Part shown: positions 36,440 through 47,940 of the stretch, piece after piece
Layout: each line of letters opens with the position of its first letter
Numbering within the stretch: the first letter of the stretch is position 1
From: Phaeosaccion multiseriatum
Lineage: Eukaryota; Protista; Ochrophyta, other classes
DNA length: 64,000 nucleotides
Direction of reading: 5' to 3'
Assembly (NCBI GenBank): GCA_965112735.1
Contig: OZ218951.1
Location: 5,766,001-5,830,000 of the forward strand
Position numbers and translations under genes: made by a program
The notes under the pieces: generated by a model
The model's database searches: none
Told to the model about the DNA's origin: nothing
The model's input: only the letters and a program-made list of their open reading frames with translations

Positions 36440-38617
36440 ATGACGCGGCGGAGACAGCGACCCGGCGCTGCCGCTGCAGCAGCCCTAGTACAGACTTGCC
36501 TGGCGCTGGTACTCTCCGCTGTCGGAGCTGCGCCGCTGCGGGAGGACTCCTCTGTGGGGCTCCACTCGCCCTGGACTGGAGCAGCTGGAGCAGCAGATGC
36601 ACCCTGGAAGGCTGTGGAGGTACCCGCCGAGGTGAGAAGATATAGGCCTGGCGGTGAAAGAGTGCATCGCTGGAGTCTCTGCACTCCTCCCAGCAGCTAT
36701 CTCCTCCCTCCTCCCTCATCCCTCCCCTCCTCTCGCACCGCACCGCACTCTCGCGTCTAGAATCAAGCCGTCATGATCAAAACAGGCTCCAACCAGTCGA
36801 GGATAGTGGAATAAGCCCATCCACACGTGCACCCCCCCCTCCCCTCCTCTTTCCCTCACTATTCTCTCTGCCCACTGAAGTGTCTCTCCTGTCGCACCCC
36901 CCTACCTCCCCTGGCAGTCACCCGAGCCGGAGGAGCTTGCAGGGGAGGCCTCTAGCACGAAGAACCGCCTCCGTGGGGCTACCAGCGGTCGGAGAACTCT
37001 TCTGGCCGACACTCCCGCGCCTACACCGGCCCCCACACCGGCCCCCACACCGGCCCCCACCCCGGCGCCCACCGATGCTCCTACGGCTGCACCAACAGCC
37101 GCTCCTGTGGCGCCGGACGCACTCGGCAGCTGCTGCGACGAGAGCTTGTTCACTGCGAACAACCAGGCCTACTTGGACAGTAACGGCAAGGAGCTGTACT
37201 GCGAGTCTGCGTGCCTCACCGAGAGCCCTATGTGAGTCGGGCTTCGTCATTCATGTAGTTGTGCAGGCAGATGGGAGCGAAGGGAGGGGCAATGGCGAAG
37301 GAAGGAAGGCAGTCACGAGGCCGCCCTTCCCTGTGTGCTGTCCTCTCACTCCTGTCCGTGTCCTCTTTTCCCCTTCCTTCCTATCAGTAACTGCGACATG
37401 TTCGGCATTGGGCAGGAGTGCAGGGGCTGCTTCACGGTCCAAGGCGCCGCAGAGGCCCTTGCCACGGGCACCTTCCCCGCTGAAGAGATCAACATTTGCC
37501 CTGGGACAGCGACAGCCGACGCAACAGCAGCTCCAACAGCTGCCCAAACAACAGCTCCGACAGCAGCTCCGACAGCAGCTCCGACAGCAGCTCCGACAGC
37601 ATCACCAACACTAGCCCCAACAGCCGCTCCGACAGCATCGCCAACCGTGGCCCCAACTCTAGGCGAGTGCACGACTGCCAGCGACTGCTCCGTCCTGGCC
37701 TCTCCTCTGGTCCTGCAGGAGCTCGGCGTGTATGGGAAGGAACTGACCTGCGACCCGACTTGCTCCGACAACAACCCAACCTATGGGGGCATGTAAGTCA
37801 AGGGAAAAGCGCGGCCTGACACCTCGTACTAAGCGGTCTGACTCGAGTGCCATCGACGTTGTTAAGTCTGTTTCAATCGGTAGTTACCTTAGTTACCTAC
37901 CTCCCTACCTCCCTGCCAACCTCCTTCCCACTTACCTGGCTCTGACTGCGCTCTTCCCTTCTTGCCTTGCCTCCCCATCTCCACTGCCACCCGCCCCCCC
38001 CCCCCCACCCTCGCAGCCTGTGCAACTACGCCGGTCTGGGCCAGAACTGCCGCGCCTGTCTCACTGCGAAAGGCCTCCGCCTCCACCTCGCCCTCAACCC
38101 GACTCACTCGGCCGACAGCCTGCCTCTGTGCGAGGAGGAGGATGCAGAGGATGGCAGCGGGGAGGAGGAGGAGGAGGAGGAGGAGGAGAGCAGTGGAGGG
38201 GAGGCGGGGGAAGAGAGCAGTGGAGGGGAGGAGGGGCAGGGGGATGAGGAGAGTGGGACAGGAGCTCCGTCGAATGGCGACGCTTCGAATTCGACGCCGA
38301 CGCCCGCCCCCTCCTCTCACGAGGCCGACGACCAGTCTGCCACGCACGCCCCCGCCCAAGTAGAGGAGGAGGAGAGCGACGCTCAGGGCGAGGAGGACTC
38401 AACAGGAGAGGCGGAGGGCGGGGGGGCGACGCGAGCAGTGTCGCCTTTCTCTCCCTCGTCTTCCTCTTCCTCCTCTTCCTCTAGCCTCCCAGCGATGGCA
38501 GCTGGAGGGGTGGCAGGGGTGGCAGCGGTGGCGGTGGTGGGCTTCCTTGCGATACGGAGGAGGTCGCGTGGCAGAGGAACTACGCCAGGGGCGGTACTGG
38601 ACGAGCTCGGCCTTTGA
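36440..38617 (+). CDS. Type I membrane Cys-rich protein with two Cys repeats, TPAP/TAAP mucin-like linkers and acidic stalk
   Basis: Signal peptide LVQTCLALVLSAVGA. Exons from about 36918, 37388 and 38018 splice in frame. Repeats GKELYCESAC..INCDMFGIGQECRGCF and GKELTCDPTC..ILCNYAGLGQNCRACL; TM AGGVAGVAAVAVVGFLAI-RRR. Confidence 0.75.
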
Positions 38618-39523: not shown

Positions 39524-42500
39524 TCACTCGGAGGATGGCGTCTCGGTCTCCCAGGCGCTGTCCAAACGGGCCACAAAGTCCGTTCCCCAGGGCCCGTCCA
39601 CGACGTAGTCTTCATCCTTGGAGGAGGACAGGATCAGGTCACGATCTCTCATAATGGGTTGGCCTTCGGTGTCCAGCCTCAGGCTCTGAGTCTCTCCCAT
39701 AACCCCGCTCCAGCGCTCAACTCCAATGTCATTCGGCCTGTTTATGAAGCCAACGTCGAGCACGTGCGCGGAGCACCGCTCAATCTCCTGGCGGTAATCC
39801 ACCATGAAGGAGTAAGTCTCTGTGAGAACAAGGACGCTCGCCCACGACCCGGGCGAGGTGAAGAGGTCTCTCTCGATGCGCTTTGCCGCGATCCACTCCT
39901 CACAGAGAGCTCTGTCCTCCGCCTTGTACAGCAGGGCCTCCACGGCCAGCAGAGCCGCAAGGTCGTCATCCACTGCCATCTCCGAAAGACGGCGACGAGG
40001 AGTGTTGTCGGACCTCTGGGCCTCCTCAAGCTCGTCCATCATTTGGAGGTCGCGCTTAACCTGGCAAGGGCCGTAAGCGTTGAAGGCCATGACAGTGACG
40101 CCGTTGGCCATGCGGTAAAGCCCCGGCTTGGTGACTTGTTTCTCCTCCATGACGACTTGCAGGGAGCCGTAGCCCAGGATTTGCTCGGCGCGTGGGCTGA
40201 ATTCCTCCCCTTCAATGTAGTCAGGGTTGTATTTCTCCACGTCGATAACCTCTACCAGCACTCTGGACGAGCTCCTGTCGTCCCCGTCGCGGGGAGTGAA
40301 CGTAAAGGCCGATGCGGTGATGTACGTCTGCGTGCGTGCGTACGTTGGGTGGGCGCGTGTGTGCAAAGGCAAGCCAGGGGATACAGGGCTCACGTGTCAA
40401 ACATGGACAAGAGAGAAAACACACACACTGGTCCAGAAGGGCACGACCATCCAAAGGCCACACAATTCTTCATTTCGCATGACTAGCTAGCAACCAGCAC
40501 GTCAGGCTTGCGAGAGACGAACAGACGTCCACGCGCAGCAGCAGCCTCGCAACGTGGGCTCACTCCACCCCCCTTCGTTATCTGTCAGTGTCTTTGGTAG
40601 TACAGTTGGTCAGATTTGAACTCTCCCCATCCCGCATATCTTGTCTTCTCTCACCGGCTGCGCGCCGTTCTCACAGGTGGGGAAGACTGCGAGTCTCCAG
40701 TTCCACTGCAGGTGCCTCTCCGCCAAGGCAGCGTACCAGGCGTTGTGGGCTCCCTTGAAGAGGAAGATTTGCTGCTTGAAGCCGAACACCATGGGGTCTC
40801 CTTGCACCAGACCATCTTAACACACCAGACACCGTCCATCGAGGCAGAGAATCAGGGAGAGAGAGAGAAGAGGGAGAGAGAGAAAATGCACACACACCAG
40901 ATGAGAGAGGGAGGGAGCAAGTGAGTAGCAGCGTGAGAGCGCGCTTAAAACTCTTGGTGGCGGGGCGCACGGCATGGAAGCCCTCGGAGAGAGGGCAGCG
41001 ATCAGACAGACAGACCCCAACAAGGAGCCCCTCGTGCAGCAGCAGCCGCAGCAGTAGCAGCAGCAGTTGGTGATGCACAGCAACCACTGGCTGGCAGAGC
41101 TTTCCACGACATGGCCGACGCCAAGCGGTACAAGTGGAACAAAGAGGTGGGACTTCAAATCGGGGGCGAGCAACCAAGGACTGTGGAGAGGGTGGGGCTC
41201 CCTCCCCCACGTGGCCTCCCCGTTTCCCGAGCGGCTGGATTACTCTCTGCGTCCAATCTTGCTCCCATCCACCCTCCCACTCGTTCACGCACCTGCGACC
41301 AACGACAGACCAAGGGTGGAGGTACCAGCCTGCAACCGTCGCCCAGCACCAGAAACTTCGGAAAGGGTCACTCGAATTATGTACACCTCGCCCGTGGTGA
41401 CACGCAAGTTTGATACCCGCTGTCCCCCCATGCACGAGGCATCGCCACCACTCTCGGCCACACCGGGCATGCAAGAGCGGCTGCCATCCTCAGACACACT
41501 GAAGACAGCGAGTTGAGTGTTGCCACCGGTACTATCACAGGTGTCCGCAGTGAGCGCTCCCACGACGGGGGCAGTGAAACGGTAAGTCAGTGTAGGTTGG
41601 TTCTGGCCGCCGCTTGCAGGAACACACGCATCATTATCCGAGCGGGGCGCACTGGCAAAGCTTCCGTCCACTGTCCTTGTATAATCACCGTCAGTGAGCA
41701 ACAGCTCTACGTCATACACTACAGAGAGGAAGGCCCAGAGAGAAGAGAGAGAAGAGGAGCACACAGGAGCAGGAGGAGGAGGTGGAGGGTTGCTTGTGAG
41801 AATGGGTGATGCTATGACAGGCACGTGCCCCGCCCATCCCTTACCATCATCACAAGCATCTCCTTCTCCGTCTTCATCCGAGTCTTCTTGTCCCGCGTTG
41901 GCATCCGAGCGGCAACTGTACGGAGCACACGGAGGGAGGCAACACAGGGCAGGCAGTCGTGGTCGAAACGCAAGGCACAGCCATCAGTTTCGTCTCGAGT
42001 GGCTGGAGAAGCGGGTACGATGGCTGTCTGTGTCAAAAACGAATCAAAAGGCTACGAAGGTGGAGTCGCACATTCATCTCACGGGAGCATTGGCTGCGCA
42101 CAACAGAGAACGAGAGGCGCTAAGAGGCAGCGCACGCAAGCACGCACAAACGTAATGAGCAGGGGCTGAGACAGACGAGACAACGAGATGTGCGCTGCAC
42201 TGACACACAGAGATGAAACAAGAAGCGCTCAGGCCCCCCTCCAGTCGGTCCATACTTTCTATACAGTGTATCACTCACTTGTCAACATTGTCCACAATGC
42301 CGTCCCCGTCAGCGTCTGCCTCAGGAGGGTCGCCACCGCCGCACGAGACGCAAGGGTAGGAGGGGTTGGGAGAAGCATATAGTCAGAAAGAAAGGCAAGT
42401 GAGTGGACAGTGACGACAAGAGAATCCGAGGTCCTGCTCATTGGCTGTGTGATGAAAAGGCAGCGAGTCGAATGCCGGGGAGCGACGAGATGACGAGAAG

Positions 42501-45270
42501 CTCAAGTCAACCTCTGTTCCTCCATCGTCTCATCACGATTCATGACCCTCGTTCCTACCTCTACATTTTCTGACGGTTGATCCGTCATCGTTGGACGTGG
42601 GGCTGATGGTGTTGTAATATCGCACGACCGGGATTCATGGAAAACGAGAGTACATCGTACAGCAATACGTGAGCACCAACGCAAACAGAGAGGCACGAGG
42701 GAGGGGGGGGGGGGTGAGCGAGAGACTGCGGGAGGCGGAGAGAAAAGCAGGCATGTCATGCGACGCACTCCTCGACATGTTGGCCGGCCAACACTCGCAC
42801 ACGCCGGGGAGGAAAGGCACCTGCCAAGTGCGGTGCTTTGCTTGCGGCCACTCACCAAGAGTCCCCAAAGCAGCATGATGTGCCAGTTGTTCCTAGTGTC
42901 TGTTCGCCACAGCCGGGAGTGATAGAGCGTGCAAAGGAGGTGATGATCGGTCAGTCATCACATCACATCGCATGGCTGGCTGGGGCGTGCACGTATGTCT
43001 CCTTTACTCCCCCTGGCATGGGCTGGTCCAGTGCCTGCCCTGGCCGCTCGTCACCCTCTCGTTTACACACACACATCTAGACTAGTGCAGACAAATCAGC
43101 GCAGACATACACATACACACACACCTCTAGACTAGTGCAGGCGTCCTGACTCTCGCACAAAGCGACGGAATCCTCCTCAAAGTCGGCGCTCTGTGCGGAG
43201 CAGGGTGGACGTTGACGAAACAAGCAAGAGGGCACGAGGTCAGCACAGAGAGGAGGAGTCAAGGGACGGGAAAGACTTCAGGTGTGGGCAGTGTAGCGGT
43301 ACGATAGTAGCAAGGCACTCAATCGGCCAGATGACATTGAGAGCGGAGTTGGGCCGCCCGATAACTCACCCTACAGGCGTCACTCGCACTGCAGGCCGCG
43401 GTGGAGGTGCCGTCGAAATTGGCACCCTGAGATTGAAGGGGAACATGGTGAGCGTTACGAGAAAAAGAGTGCAGGAGGTCACCAAGAGGGACACACGGGG
43501 GAAGGTCAGGAGAGGGGGAAAGCTTGAGGTGTAGGCCGTGTAGCGGTAGCTACGACAGGAGCAAGGCACGATCGGCCAGATGACATTGAGAGCGCGCATG
43601 GGCCGCCCATTTACTCACAAAACAGGAGAAGGACACAGAGCAGGCCGCGCTGGAGGTGCCGGAGAAATTGGCCTCCTGTAATACAAAGGATTCATGGTGG
43701 GTGTAGACGAGACAAGAGGGCGGGAGGTCAGCAGAGGGACACAGGGGGCAGGACAGGAGAGGGGGAAAGCTTGAGGTGTGGCTGGGCCGTGTAGCGGTAG
43801 CTACGACAGGAGCAAGACACAATCGGGCAGATGACACCGAGAGCGCACATGGGCTGCCCGATACCTCACCTCACAAGAGCCCGCCACATTGCAGGCTGCG
43901 CTGGAGGTGCCAGAAAAAGAGGCCCCCTGTGATTGAAGGGGAACATGGAGTGTGTAGACGAGAAAAGAGGGCAGGAGGTGAGCAGAGGGACAGGGGGGAG
44001 GCCAGGAGAGGGGGGAAGCTTTAGGTGTAGGCCGTGTAGCGGTAGCTACGACAGGAGCAAGACATACACATCGGCCAGATGACAGCGAGAGCGTACATGG
44101 GCCGCCCATTTACTCACAAAACAAGATCTTCCAACGCCGCAGACTACGGTGGAGGTGCCGGAGAAAGTGACATCCTGTAATACAAAGGATTCATGGTGGG
44201 TGTAGACGAGACAAAAGGGCGGGAGGTCAGCAGAGGGACACAGGGGGGCAGGTCAGGAGAGGGGAGAAGCAAGCTTGAGGTGTGGGCCGCGTAGCGGTAC
44301 GACAGGAGCAAGATACTTCATCGGCGAGATGACAACGAGAGCGGAGGTTGGTTGGGTGACTCCTCACACAACGACGGGACATGAGGTTAGCCGCGACCAC
44401 AACATGGAGGAGTTGAATGAACACGAGCGACGGCTTCCATGACCGTGTGGGGAGGAGGGGGTGCACAGGGGACAGTTGGGGGGGGGGCAGCAGCTGCACA
44501 AACTCCTTACTCACGCTACAGCTACCGTCTTTCTCGCACATAACGGAGCAGTTCTTCATAACGGGTGAGCGGAGGCGAGGTGGGCCCAAGGGGTGGAACC
44601 GAGCAGCCGTATACGATGGTAGAGAGGAGCAAACGACGACAAAGGGCAGCAGGAGGGCGTTAGCTAGGATGGGTATTTGTGTGTGTTGGGGGGGGGGGGG
44701 GGGCTGCTTTAGCTCAAGATGCGCGCAAGCTAAACGCAAATGGCACGAGGACGAGGGTGTATTGAAGGACAATGCAACACCACGGCCGACACTTGAAGCC
44801 CACTCGGGAACTTACCTCAAACGTCGTCAGCTGGCGAGACGAGGAAGAGATGCGTACCAACGGTCAAGGACATCGTCCGATCCCCGTGCGCGATATCCAC
44901 CCAACACGAGGATATGCGCCGCGCAGCAGGTGCCAGGGGGAGAGGCAGAGGAACCCACGTGAGGAGGCGAAATGGGGTGTCAGAAGGGCTCACTACCTCA
45001 CATACAGTTGGGAAGACTCAAAGACAGCACTTGCACAGAGCACAAATCACCAAGACAATTCGAGGGTCCGCATAGAGGAGCCAAAACGCCAGCGAGGGGC
45101 GGCTTGCGGGGCCCATCCATCGCGGGTGAGACGGCGGGGGGCATCTACGTGCACACGCACCCGGCAATTCGAGTCTGTACAGACCACCGCTTGATCATCA
45201 GGAGAGTCGCACGTGCATGTGCTTGCGAAGGCGGTGACAGTGTATGCCGCCGTGCACACAGTCGTCCAGT
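39524..45270 (-). CDS. Modular secreted protein: exon-encoded 19-aa Cys repeats + thrombospondin type-3 repeat + beta-sandwich + root-cap/VWD-like domain (13 or more exons; 5' end unresolved)
   Basis: Phase-consistent exons 44553-44515, 44174-44118, 43926-43870, 43675-43619, 43426-43370, 43190-43125, 42899-42856, 42602-42559, 42315-42279, 41915-41845, 41718-41293, 40815-40655 and 40327-39524. These give DADGDGIVDNVDNCRSDANAGQEDSDEDGEGDACD (TSP3) and QGDPMVFGFKQQIFLFKGAHNAWY (GDP..G..F.F.G motif), plus RRL motifs. Confidence 0.75.
43125..44370 (-). repeat. Tandem array of ~250-bp exon+intron cassettes (5 intron copies, 4 intact 57-nt exons plus a terminal 66-nt exon)
   Basis: Recurrent intronic blocks such as GTAGCGGTAGCTACGACAGGAGCAAG...GGCCAGATGACA with a period of 248-251 bp. 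Confidence 0.88.
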
Positions 45271-45996
45271 CTGGGCGTGGGCCGGGCGATGCATGCGAAC
45301 GGAAGACACAACAAAGAAGAACACGGTATCAGCAAAGAGACGCCGCGAGCAGGGGATAGACTAGGGAAGGTGCAGAGTCCAATTCCCAGAAAGCAAGAAG
45401 TGAGTACTGCGGGGCAGCACCGGCCGCTGCTGCCCGTTCACTTCTTGGGTACCAATAAGCCTGGGGAGAGGCAGAAGCTTCTCAAGTACAAGAGGACATC
45501 TGCCCGCTGCCAACCTGTTTGGCCTCGGACCGGTTGAAGATGGTGTTGTAGAGTGAGAATTAGAAAGAGCCCCGCCCTCCTCCTCCAAGATGACCTCGGC
45601 TTGTTCAGCAAGGGCCGGAGAAGGGCCGGAGAGGTGAAAGGCAGAAGGACGAAGGTAGGGGGCGGTGTTGGCACGGGAAGCAAGAGAGGGAGTCAGCTCT
45701 GCCACAGAGCGAGAGACTAATAAAGGTCGCTCAGCAGCTAGCGCCATCAGCCAGCCAGAGAGTGCCATGGTGGCGTGGCTGCCGCTTCGAGGGCTCGTCC
45801 TCCCCACCTACATAGGCAGGCAGCCATCTCCGTCCCTCCCCTTCTGCCTTCCATGCTCATGTACCACACCTAAAAGGCCTCATGGAAACAGGCAGGATGA
45901 GAAAGCCACAAAACGCCAAGAAATCAAGAAATGATAAGAGTAGATACCTTATGCCCGTCGTGCATGGCAGCAGTCCCAAGAGGGATAAGCGTCTCC

Positions 45997-46033
<37 letters not shown>

Positions 46034-46356
46034 CCTCTTTCTCTCTCTCTATAAAAATGGGTGTATGCGAAAAAAGTGGGAGAAAATGAAAAAATGAAAA
46101 AATGGCGGAAAATGGAAAATCGGAAAAACCGCGAAAAAACGGGTCTATAGAGCTGAAACGTAAATTGCACGATACCTCGATCTCAGAATTTTTCTCCTTT
46201 CTTATTTGTTGCTTTGCTGCTGCTGCTGAAGCGAGGAGACTTGCGAGGAAGACGTGGCACAGTCCCCAATACTCCACGGAGACTCGTTGCTGAGGTGTAA
46301 GGCTCAGTCAGCAGAGGGAAGAAGGTGCTGCTGCGTCAGGAGGAGAGCTTTGAAAC

Positions 46357-47940
46357 ATGATACACGATTTGCCACTGCTGCTCCTCATGGCAGTGGTGCT
46401 GGGGGTGCTGGTGCTGCAGTGGAGAGAGTCTATGTCCACTCTGGAGGACACACTCCTGCGCCACCCAGACGTGGCCGTCATTCGAAAGCTTCAATTTTTC
46501 GGATCTACCAGAAGCTCCAGCACAAGCTACTTCGCCCCCCCCCCCACCACCACCACCACCACCACCACCACCACCAGCAGCAGCAGCAGAATCAGCAGCA
46601 GCACTATCCCTGTAGTAACCTACGGTGTGAGCTCGAGCACCGTTATCTACTATGATGACGACGGCGGCTACGACGACGACGACTTTTATTCCGGAGCATC
46701 GAGTCTTCGACACTTATCCAGAGGCGGGGGGTTGTCTGCTGTGGTCGCCTTATTCGTGATCCTTTTGCTCTCGCTGGACCTGCTGCAGGTTGGGACTGCG
46801 TTCTCCCCAAGCTGCGCCACCACCTCAACCACCAGGGTAGCAGCGAGGGGGCTCAGGGCCAGAGGAACCAGCACCAAGGGGCGCGCTGGCTTTGGGTATG
46901 CAGCAACCTCGACGGCCAGGAGAGCCCCTGGGAGAGCCCAGCGGGGCATGCGCCGGCATATATCGGTGTGGGGGAGGAAGGAGGGAGTCGATGGGGAGGA
47001 GAATCTTGACGATGGTGAGGGCCTTGGCCGCAATGAGGACGACCGGGGGGGGGCAGCGGAGTCTGAGGACACAAAAAGTGAGTTGCCATCCACGCCCCGA
47101 AAGGGCAAATACTATATCCGTGCCGACGGGGAGATTGCACAGTATGGTATGGAGGGGGGAGAGGGGGGGGGTGAAGGCAGCGGGCAGCAGGCTGATCGCG
47201 GAGAAGGGTGGCTGGAAAGAGAAAAGGCAAAGCTGAAGAAGGCAATGGAAATGAGCGAGGAGAAGGAAGGGGAGGGGGACGGGGAGGGGGAGGGAGGGAG
47301 TGCCAAGGGGGAGGTGATGGAAGAAGAGACGGAGGAAAACATCCCCTTAGTCAGGGAAGACCCCTTCATCACCAAGCGTAGGGAACTTTATGCCGAGTCG
47401 GCCTATTATGACGAGCCTTTGCCCGAACGACCAAGGTGAGGTGACGGCACGCAGCGTCTCATAGCGCCATACCATCACGTGGATAAAGCATGGTGCCGCT
47501 CAACCCCTGAGAGCGAGAGAGAGGAAGAGTCCCGAGGGTGGGGTGCAGGGAGGGGAGGGGAGGGGAAGCACCACGGGGAAGCACAGGGAAGATGCTCCAT
47601 GCACCTCTCGGTCGGCTAACCCTCATCCTGCCCTACCTCCCTCCCTCCATCACCCTGCCCTCCCTCCCTCTCCCTCTCCTCCCCTTCCCCCCTCCCTCCC
47701 TCCCCTCTCCTCCTCTCTCTGTCTCTCTCTCTCTCTCTGTCCTCCTCAAGGTGGGGCCCCGGTGGCATCTTCCCTGTGGACGTGAGCGCCACGGGATCCT
47801 TCCTGACGCTCGTGCCCTTCGCGCTCATTGCCGTGGTGGGCCTGGCCACCCTCGGGGCCGTGAATCTCGAGAGCGCCAAGCAGGACAGCATCTCTGTCCA
47901 GCGGGTGCAAGACGTCAGCGGGGACGACTTCTGGCAGTAG
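46357..47940 (+). CDS. Unknown protein, probably plastid membrane (signal + TAF-SP motif, C-terminal TM), 2 exons; start uncertain
   Basis: VVALFVILLLSLDLLQVGTAFSP followed by an R/T/A-rich transit-like segment. Intron about 47436-47749 joins to WGPGGIFP...FALIAVVGLATLG...FWQ*. Confidence 0.5.

Follow-up and report, generated by a model that had tools for sequence, protein, structure and literature searches.

An array of 57-nt repeat exons, probably duplicated in the germline and with codons apparently selected for change, in a putative cysteine-rich repeat protein gene of Phaeosaccion multiseriatum

We analysed a stretch of 64,000 nucleotides (nt) from the ochrophyte Phaeosaccion multiseriatum (contig OZ218951.1), hereafter the window, which corresponds to G000:C2:5766001-5830000 of a 67-megabase (Mb), 22-contig genome; coordinates are window positions unless another locus is named. 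Its DNA is eukaryotic in character, with a GC content of 58-65% and short GT-AG introns. On the minus strand lies a predicted gene in which four 57-nt phase-0 exons, E1-E4, encode repeats R1-R4 and are arranged as a tandem array of units of about 250 base pairs (bp), delimited by Tandem Repeats Finder at 43268-44343 (period 251 bp, 4.3 copies, 78% matches). The evidence points to an array built by local tandem duplication in the germline, in which a few codons per repeat have probably been selected for change. Each of the four exons is preceded by a pyrimidine tract with CAG and followed by GTGAG, making canonical AG/GTGAG sites. A preliminary description of this DNA, made from its letters, had reported these units with one symmetric exon per repeat and two related flanking exons; the period and the exact translations at the four positions agree with it, and all six listed exons have AG before and GT after them, a length divisible by three and the translation given. 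Both flanking exons do encode related repeats, but NCSVMCEKDGSCS, which had been listed simply as a related exon, is the second half of a split repeat, R0: joined to the micro-exon LTTFE it matches the unsplit repeat IKTFENCNVICSGEDSCHL of the paralog L011. The repeats of the array follow the consensus x-A-x-F-x-G-T-S-x-A-A-C-x-x-x-x-S-C-x, with 19 residues, two cysteines and one repeat per exon. Among the window repeats the Cys, Phe and Ser residues of the scaffold never change and positions 1, 3, 5, 13, 15, 16 and 19 vary, so that variation is not confined to the interval between the two cysteines, as had been described.

The introns of the array, I1-I4, measure 179-194 nt and share 74-89% pairwise identity, which falls short of the near-copies first reported; the four 57-nt exons share 61-72%, less than their introns. 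The sequences around the splice sites alternate along the array: tttgtattacag / gtgagtaaatgg is common to E1 and E3, and cttcaatc.cag / gtgag.tatcgg to E2 and E4. When 47 introns sampled at 13 loci are placed in a tree, I1 pairs with I3 and the tail of intron I0, which lies upstream of R1, with I2, and all window introns fall into a single clade, sister to the array at C3:5.09 Mb. The alternating contexts together with the intron clades indicate that the array arose through the copying of a block of two units, about 500 bp long, and the single clade of window introns indicates that it grew locally. Nothing in the tree points to exons brought in from other loci, which leaves the proposed exchange of exons between loci without a trace here. 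The last part of I0 is a full copy of the unit intron, with a relic GTGAGG donor near 44367-44362, which hints at a former exon ahead of this copy, since lost; in the head of I0, similarity to the unit did not exceed the level of shuffled sequence, and no recognisable exon or relic exon was found there. Scanning both strands of 42001-46000 revealed repeat exons on the minus strand only, and no spare exon was detectable inside the introns of the window array. These results support local germline tandem duplication as the origin of the array.

In order to compare the rates of change of exons and introns, we aligned the array with itself shifted by two units. Differing columns were more frequent in exons (37/114) than in introns (55/378), with an odds ratio of 2.8 (Fisher p=5e-5). 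The contrast is sharpest around E1 and E3, where the flanks are almost identical over about 100 nt on the upstream side and 22 nt on the downstream side and the exons differ at 18 of 57 positions. The excess is concentrated in a few codons. Because a post-hoc choice was to be avoided, positions were counted as hypervariable if their entropy exceeded 2.8 bits among 60 distinct repeat peptides, all taken from other loci; these are positions 1, 3, 15, 16 and 19. At these codons the window's four exons have 13/15 variable columns and 1.33 parsimony steps per site, compared with 59/173 and 0.387 for introns I1-I4 taken as the reference class (Fisher p=9e-5); the remaining 14 codons, with 16/42 variable columns and 0.43 steps per site, are indistinguishable from introns (p=0.72). 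The comparison of exon with intron divergence that the preliminary description had proposed thus shows defined codons changing faster than introns. Codons 6-8, 12 and 18 (GGC ACC TCC, TGC, TGT) are identical in all four units, synonymous sites included, and among codons whose amino acid is invariant the third position has changed at 1 of 6 sites.

The same contrast might arise if old, diverged exons were lying between introns recently made alike by gene conversion, with no positive selection at all. Tandem repeats are prone to conversion, and the near-identity of the E1 and E3 flanks beside exons differing at a third of their positions is what such homogenisation could leave behind. However, the scaffold codons within the exons are as alike as the introns, and their identity even at synonymous sites argues against old exons between freshly converted introns: conversion tracts would have to skip individual codons. 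Furthermore, the fast positions are also variable at unrelated loci. We therefore consider homogenisation without selection improbable, and these observations favour selection for change at a few codons. Together they support the view that diversifying pressure acts on about five codons in each repeat, as would be expected of a binding surface, and that germline duplication was combined with diversifying selection.

Another reading, raised by the preliminary description, is that the cell includes, skips or chooses among the phase 0-0 repeat exons and thereby makes several isoforms. All six repeat exons are symmetric, and Ectocarpus transcripts with differing combinations of leucine-rich repeat (LRR) exons have been reported (Teng et al. 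2024, PMC11378527). But when a whole repeat is copied together with its intron, a symmetric phase follows automatically and is not evidence for use as a cassette. The splice sites of every repeat exon are strong and canonical, with GTGAG at the donor and CAG after a pyrimidine-rich tract at the acceptor. A search of 42800-45300 for docking/selector complementarity of the Dscam type found three scattered inverted pairs, none recurring in each unit, so that no inverted repeat pairs one site with every unit; Rfam detected no RNA family in the introns of the array. Combinatorial splicing is thus unlikely, and we infer that the repeat exons are spliced constitutively.

Around the array, a model of 15 exons is phase-compatible throughout and gives 676 codons with no internal stop and with every splice site intact (Table 1). 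It reads in order: a cap, six repeats, a TSP3 pair, a domain of about 141 residues and a weakly VWD-like tail. The cap exon is homologous to the pre-repeat module of the paralogs L011 and L027 and agrees with it in acceptor position and phase; in L027 the cap exon also enters in phase 1, and in that paralog it follows a TSP3 exon pair with the same phase. On the other side of the array, the two tentative C-cap exons, when joined, read by eye as CC-x4-C-x5-C, with the cysteine spacing of the second exon of L011. Close to R5 (43065-43140, minus strand), the final 18 nt of this repeat exon and its GT-rich donor (ctgcactagtctaga.gtgtgtgtgt) recur 50 nt downstream, possibly as an alternative donor or as a scar of replication slippage.

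Table 1. Predicted exons of the array gene, with the intron upstream of R1, in order of transcription (window positions)
Feature	Position	Strand	Details
Cap exon	45161..45270	-	110 nt, enters in phase 1, WTTVCTAAYTVTAFASTCTCDSPDDQAVVCTDSNCR, GTGCGT donor
Micro-exon LTTFE, start of repeat R0	44816..44830	-	15 nt; good acceptor ccag, donor gtaagt
Exon NCSVMCEKDGSCS, end of repeat R0	44515..44553	-	39 nt
Intron I0	44175..44514	-	340 nt; last ~190 nt (44175-44365) a full copy of the unit intron
Repeat exon R1	44118..44174	-	57 nt, phase 0-0, DVTFSGTSTVVCGVGRSCF
Repeat exon R2	43870..43926	-	57 nt, GASFSGTSSAACNVAGSCE
Repeat exon R3	43619..43675	-	57 nt, EANFSGTSSAACSVSFSCF
Repeat exon R4	43370..43426	-	57 nt, GANFDGTSTAACSASDACR
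Repeat exon R5, terminal	43125..43190	-	66 nt, SADFEEDSVALCESQDACTSLE, weaker GTGTGT donor
C-cap exon 1 (tentative)	42856..42899	-	44 nt, phase 0 to 2, TLGTTGTSCCFGDS
C-cap exon 2 (tentative)	42769..42793	-	25 nt, phase 2 to 0, (C)VGRPTCRG, GTGCGT donor
TSP3 exon a	42279..42319	-	ADADGDGIVDNVD + 2 nt; alternative acceptor 4 nt downstream
TSP3 exon b	41845..41915	-	(N)CRSDANAGQEDSDEDGEGDACDD
426-nt exon	41293..41718	-	~141-residue domain without family assignment ("PPC-like" in the preliminary description)
GDPMVFGF-motif exon, start of tail domain	40655..40815	-	70-86% identity to paralogs
Last exon, tail domain	39524..40327	-	267 codons + stop codon (39526-39524)

Joining the two TSP3 exons restores, by eye, a TSP3 motif in which ..DGDGIVDNVDN continues into CRSDANAGQEDSDEDGEGDACDD and DN-C is completed across the junction. 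Pfam TSP_3 (PF02412) scored 14.8 bits on the single 23-residue exon b (cut-off 25), the motif spanning two exons, and the pair is predicted from its sequence to bind calcium. Pfam searches of every large open frame of the array gene returned nothing apart from this sub-threshold TSP_3 match, with no GTPase or NB-ARC domain. The 426-nt exon encodes a domain without a Pfam match that is conserved in paralogs (46% identity, E 3e-32). For the tail exon we found about 30 paralogs in the genome, several of them with in-frame stops. Against six of these paralogs the ratio of nonsynonymous to synonymous divergence (dN/dS) was 0.18-0.29 at a dS of 0.5-0.8, which indicates a real gene under constraint. 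The tail domain matched neither Pfam VWD nor any Protein Data Bank chain by sequence. Its structure was modelled from 17 paralogs without the first strands, which are encoded by the preceding exon (predicted local distance difference test score, pLDDT, 60; predicted template modelling score 0.63). Foldseek found no match for this model, and the top rows of a VIA-align comparison were mostly VWD regions of MUC5B, VWF, FCGBP and MUC2 (Z 5.3-3.7, 80-98 residues aligned), the best matches being VWD domains at Z 5.3-4.1. Of the TSP3/VWD-like protein originally proposed, the TSP3 part is probable from the motif read across the exon junction, and a VWD-like tail is plausible, though these fold matches are weak.

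The array is one member of a larger family. Searched with a profile built from five repeats of the window, the genome gave 76 matching places, and a direct scan of 12 other loci recovered at least 84 motif-bearing exons, each exactly 57 nt long, whose translations comprise 64 distinct peptides. Positions F4, S8, A10, C12, S17 and C18 form a nearly invariant family scaffold, and the window exons combine this scaffold with the homologous intron. Sister arrays, which the preliminary description had suggested seeking across the genome, lie at C3:5.09 Mb, C3:5.33 Mb, C7:1.53 Mb, C9:1.29-1.33 Mb, C5:1.14-1.16 Mb and other loci. They share with the window array the 57-nt exon, the scaffold, homologous introns (66-85% identity) and, in several cases, the same downstream tail; the window array differs in its small size (4 + 2 repeats) and in its greater divergence, for instance in comparison with the C3:5.09 Mb array. 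Many of the tail paralogs follow a sister array at a distance of 3-5 kb (C7:1.54 Mb, C9:1.34 Mb, C14:0.74 Mb, C5:1.14 Mb, C16:1.85 Mb, C7:1.61 Mb), and this recurring spacing indicates that the order of array, TSP3 and tail is a conserved architecture. Functional constraint on the introns was considered as a cause of their similarity and set aside as superfluous, since the dS of 0.5-0.8 between paralog tails fits an intron identity of 66-78% between loci and no special constraint is needed. We also rejected an introner or another mobile element as the origin of the conserved intron, because a search with the intron alone matched only arrays of the 19-residue repeat family, at 70-86% identity.

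Several of these loci have features of their own. The closest sister array (L019, G000:C3:5089000-5098999) contains at least 33 exons of 57 nt with a higher-order repeat unit that spans five to six of them, and many of its exon peptides recur exactly. In L027 (G000:C7:1532000-1541000) the gene has two arrays, of 4 and 5 exons, and the cap exon after a TSP3 pair lies at positions ~560-1220, indicating that the module of TSP3 pair, cap and array has itself been iterated. At C5:3.96 Mb, C5:4.08-4.10 Mb and C6:3.06 Mb (L011, L012, L014) we found seven paralogous first exons, 74-95% identical, in which a signal peptide, the cap and three contiguous repeats are encoded with no intron between them; no other natural open frame with several repeats was found. 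In the paralog exon L011:340-768, signal peptide, cap module and repeats lie in one open frame. Pfam assigned no family to this natural exon at E values up to 10. Searched with HMMER against 1.84 billion representative proteins, it gave two weak matches. The first, P0001, a bacterial Cys-rich protein, was rejected as a relative because its repeat period differs. The second, P0002, is a singleton of 128 residues from an unrelated assembly in ENA; it is rich in lysine and asparagine and has four to five two-Cys repeats in the same 19-residue register, with all cysteines aligned. Word-based protein searches with the tail exon, the paralog first exon and the profile yielded only P0002, and the ESM Atlas gave no usable match. 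By sequence, the repeat thus appears to have one distant relative among these 1.84 billion proteins, a negative that is weakened because the databases do not contain the products of this genome and because repeats split into 57-nt exons escape gene calling of the prokaryotic style.

On the basis of these data we propose that an exon-plus-intron unit was duplicated in the germline within one gene of at least 15 exons, and that two units together, about 500 bp, were then copied once more, which would have placed four 57-nt phase-0 exons between the older split repeat R0 and the 66-nt terminal repeat R5. Each exon would contribute one 19-residue repeat to a cysteine-rich rod with N- and C-caps. 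After the duplication the scaffold codons would have stayed as alike as the introns, while 5-7 codons per repeat gained about three times more changes, and the fast codons (mainly 1, 3, 15, 16 and 19) would be the signature of selection for new surface residues. We assign this reading as a whole (germline tandem duplication, a cysteine-rich repeat rod and selected surface codons) a probability of about 0.6. Within it, the sequence shows the layout of the exons, the course of the duplication, the contrast in rates and the family setting, and the protein may serve in extracellular binding or adhesion. Secretion, which the preliminary description had claimed, would fit the types of its modules and the clear signal peptide in the first exon of a distant paralog; for the window gene itself the first exon was not found.

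Several points weigh against this proposal. Splicing, expression and exon usage are predicted from genomic DNA. The two C-cap exons were assigned by phase and cysteine spacing only, and no convincing start codon or signal-peptide exon was seen at 45300-46000. The comparison of rates involves just four 57-nt units, so its counts are small, and gene conversion of the introns could inflate the contrast between exons and introns. The AlphaFold model of the three-repeat paralog exon, the sole foldable natural piece, reached a pLDDT of 46 with two short strands per repeat and is not evidence for a solenoid; the beta-solenoid fold first suggested for the repeats is thus left without structural backing.

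A broader claim is that roughly 12-30 genes with an array and a TSP3/VWD-like tail form an ochrophyte repertoire for extracellular recognition, diversified not only by duplication and selection but also by regulated inclusion or skipping of exons or by recombination between introns; on present evidence this is doubtful. It is also improbable that the window gene is a decaying or unexpressed copy, a pseudogene within a birth-and-death family whose variable codons are merely unconstrained. In its favour, no start codon or signal-peptide exon was found for the window gene, and in-frame stops do occur in several tail paralogs, as does a relic unit intron without an exon in front of it in I0. However, the 676 stop-free codons, the intact splice sites and the dN/dS of the tail point the other way, as does a scaffold of Cys, Phe and Ser that has not changed, and a loss of constraint would let variable codons change at the rate of introns, not three times above it. 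The array gene is probably functional. Somatic exon shuffling, by which the cassettes of one individual would be reordered through recombination between similar introns, was raised as speculation for Ectocarpus LRR genes (Zambounis et al., PMC3341825) and could use the similar introns as substrates, but it is very improbable here: the window array has neither opposite-strand copies nor a detectable spare exon in its introns, the units cluster by locus, and somatic change cannot show in one assembly.

The proposed germline duplication with selected surface codons resembles a design known from brown algae. A genome-wide screen found exon shuffling in Ectocarpus to be overwhelmingly restricted to LRR and tetratricopeptide repeat (TPR) loci (Zambounis et al. 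2012, PMC3341825), and the one-LRR-per-exon ROCO genes and one-TPR-per-exon NB-ARC genes of brown algae have 72-nt exons (PMC3341825, PMC11378527). The window array shares with these genes a tandem arrangement of exon-plus-intron units that are equal in length and symmetric in phase, with one structural repeat per exon, a copy number that differs between paralogs, and faster change or positive selection at a few defined positions of the repeat. It differs from them in its 57-nt phase-0 exon, in a two-Cys 19-mer that has no Pfam match and is neither LRR nor TPR, and in a TSP3 and VWD-like tail instead of ROC-COR or NB-ARC; at this locus no spare or antisense exons were seen, nor any sign of exchange between loci. 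The apparent cellular location also differs, the LRR and TPR receptor candidates of brown algae being intracellular. Like the mutually exclusive exon arrays of Dscam, the window gene has tandemly duplicated exons that would each encode a variable unit of an extracellular recognition protein, but it shows no docking/selector complementarity and the repeats of a rod are expected to be used together. With the type-3 repeats of thrombospondin and COMP it has in common the motif D-x-D-x-D-G-x-x-D-x-x-D-N-C, in one TSP3 pair only. The tail, modelled as a GDP-containing beta-sandwich, finds its best structural matches in VWD domains of the kind assembled in mucins and VWF, without a sequence match and with Z of at most 5.3.

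In the literature we found no description of a cysteine-repeat version of exon-per-repeat arrays. The window gene would apply the known brown-algal design to a different module, a cysteine-braced repeat of 19 residues with almost no public relatives, linked to parts of extracellular type (TSP3 and the VWD-like tail) in a gene family that has expanded in this genome. Provided that they are displayed on the cell surface, these proteins would be candidates for adhesion or for the recognition of partners, prey or pathogens, and, should the reading as a repertoire prove true, they would be a secreted counterpart of the intracellular LRR and TPR cassette receptors. A small array with a clear duplication history is also a convenient site to measure rates of surface change.

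The neighbourhood of the array gene was also inspected. Upstream, a (GA)n and A+T-rich stretch at 45990-46130, probably a shared promoter region, separates it from a divergent open frame on the plus strand (46357-47439) encoding 360 residues with a hydrophobic segment and Gly/Glu-rich tracts. Downstream, at 37335-38617 on the plus strand, there are two open frames: the first has a Pro/Thr/Ala repeat of the PT type, with a sub-threshold match to Pfam PT, and the second is acidic, with a C-terminal hydrophobic anchor.

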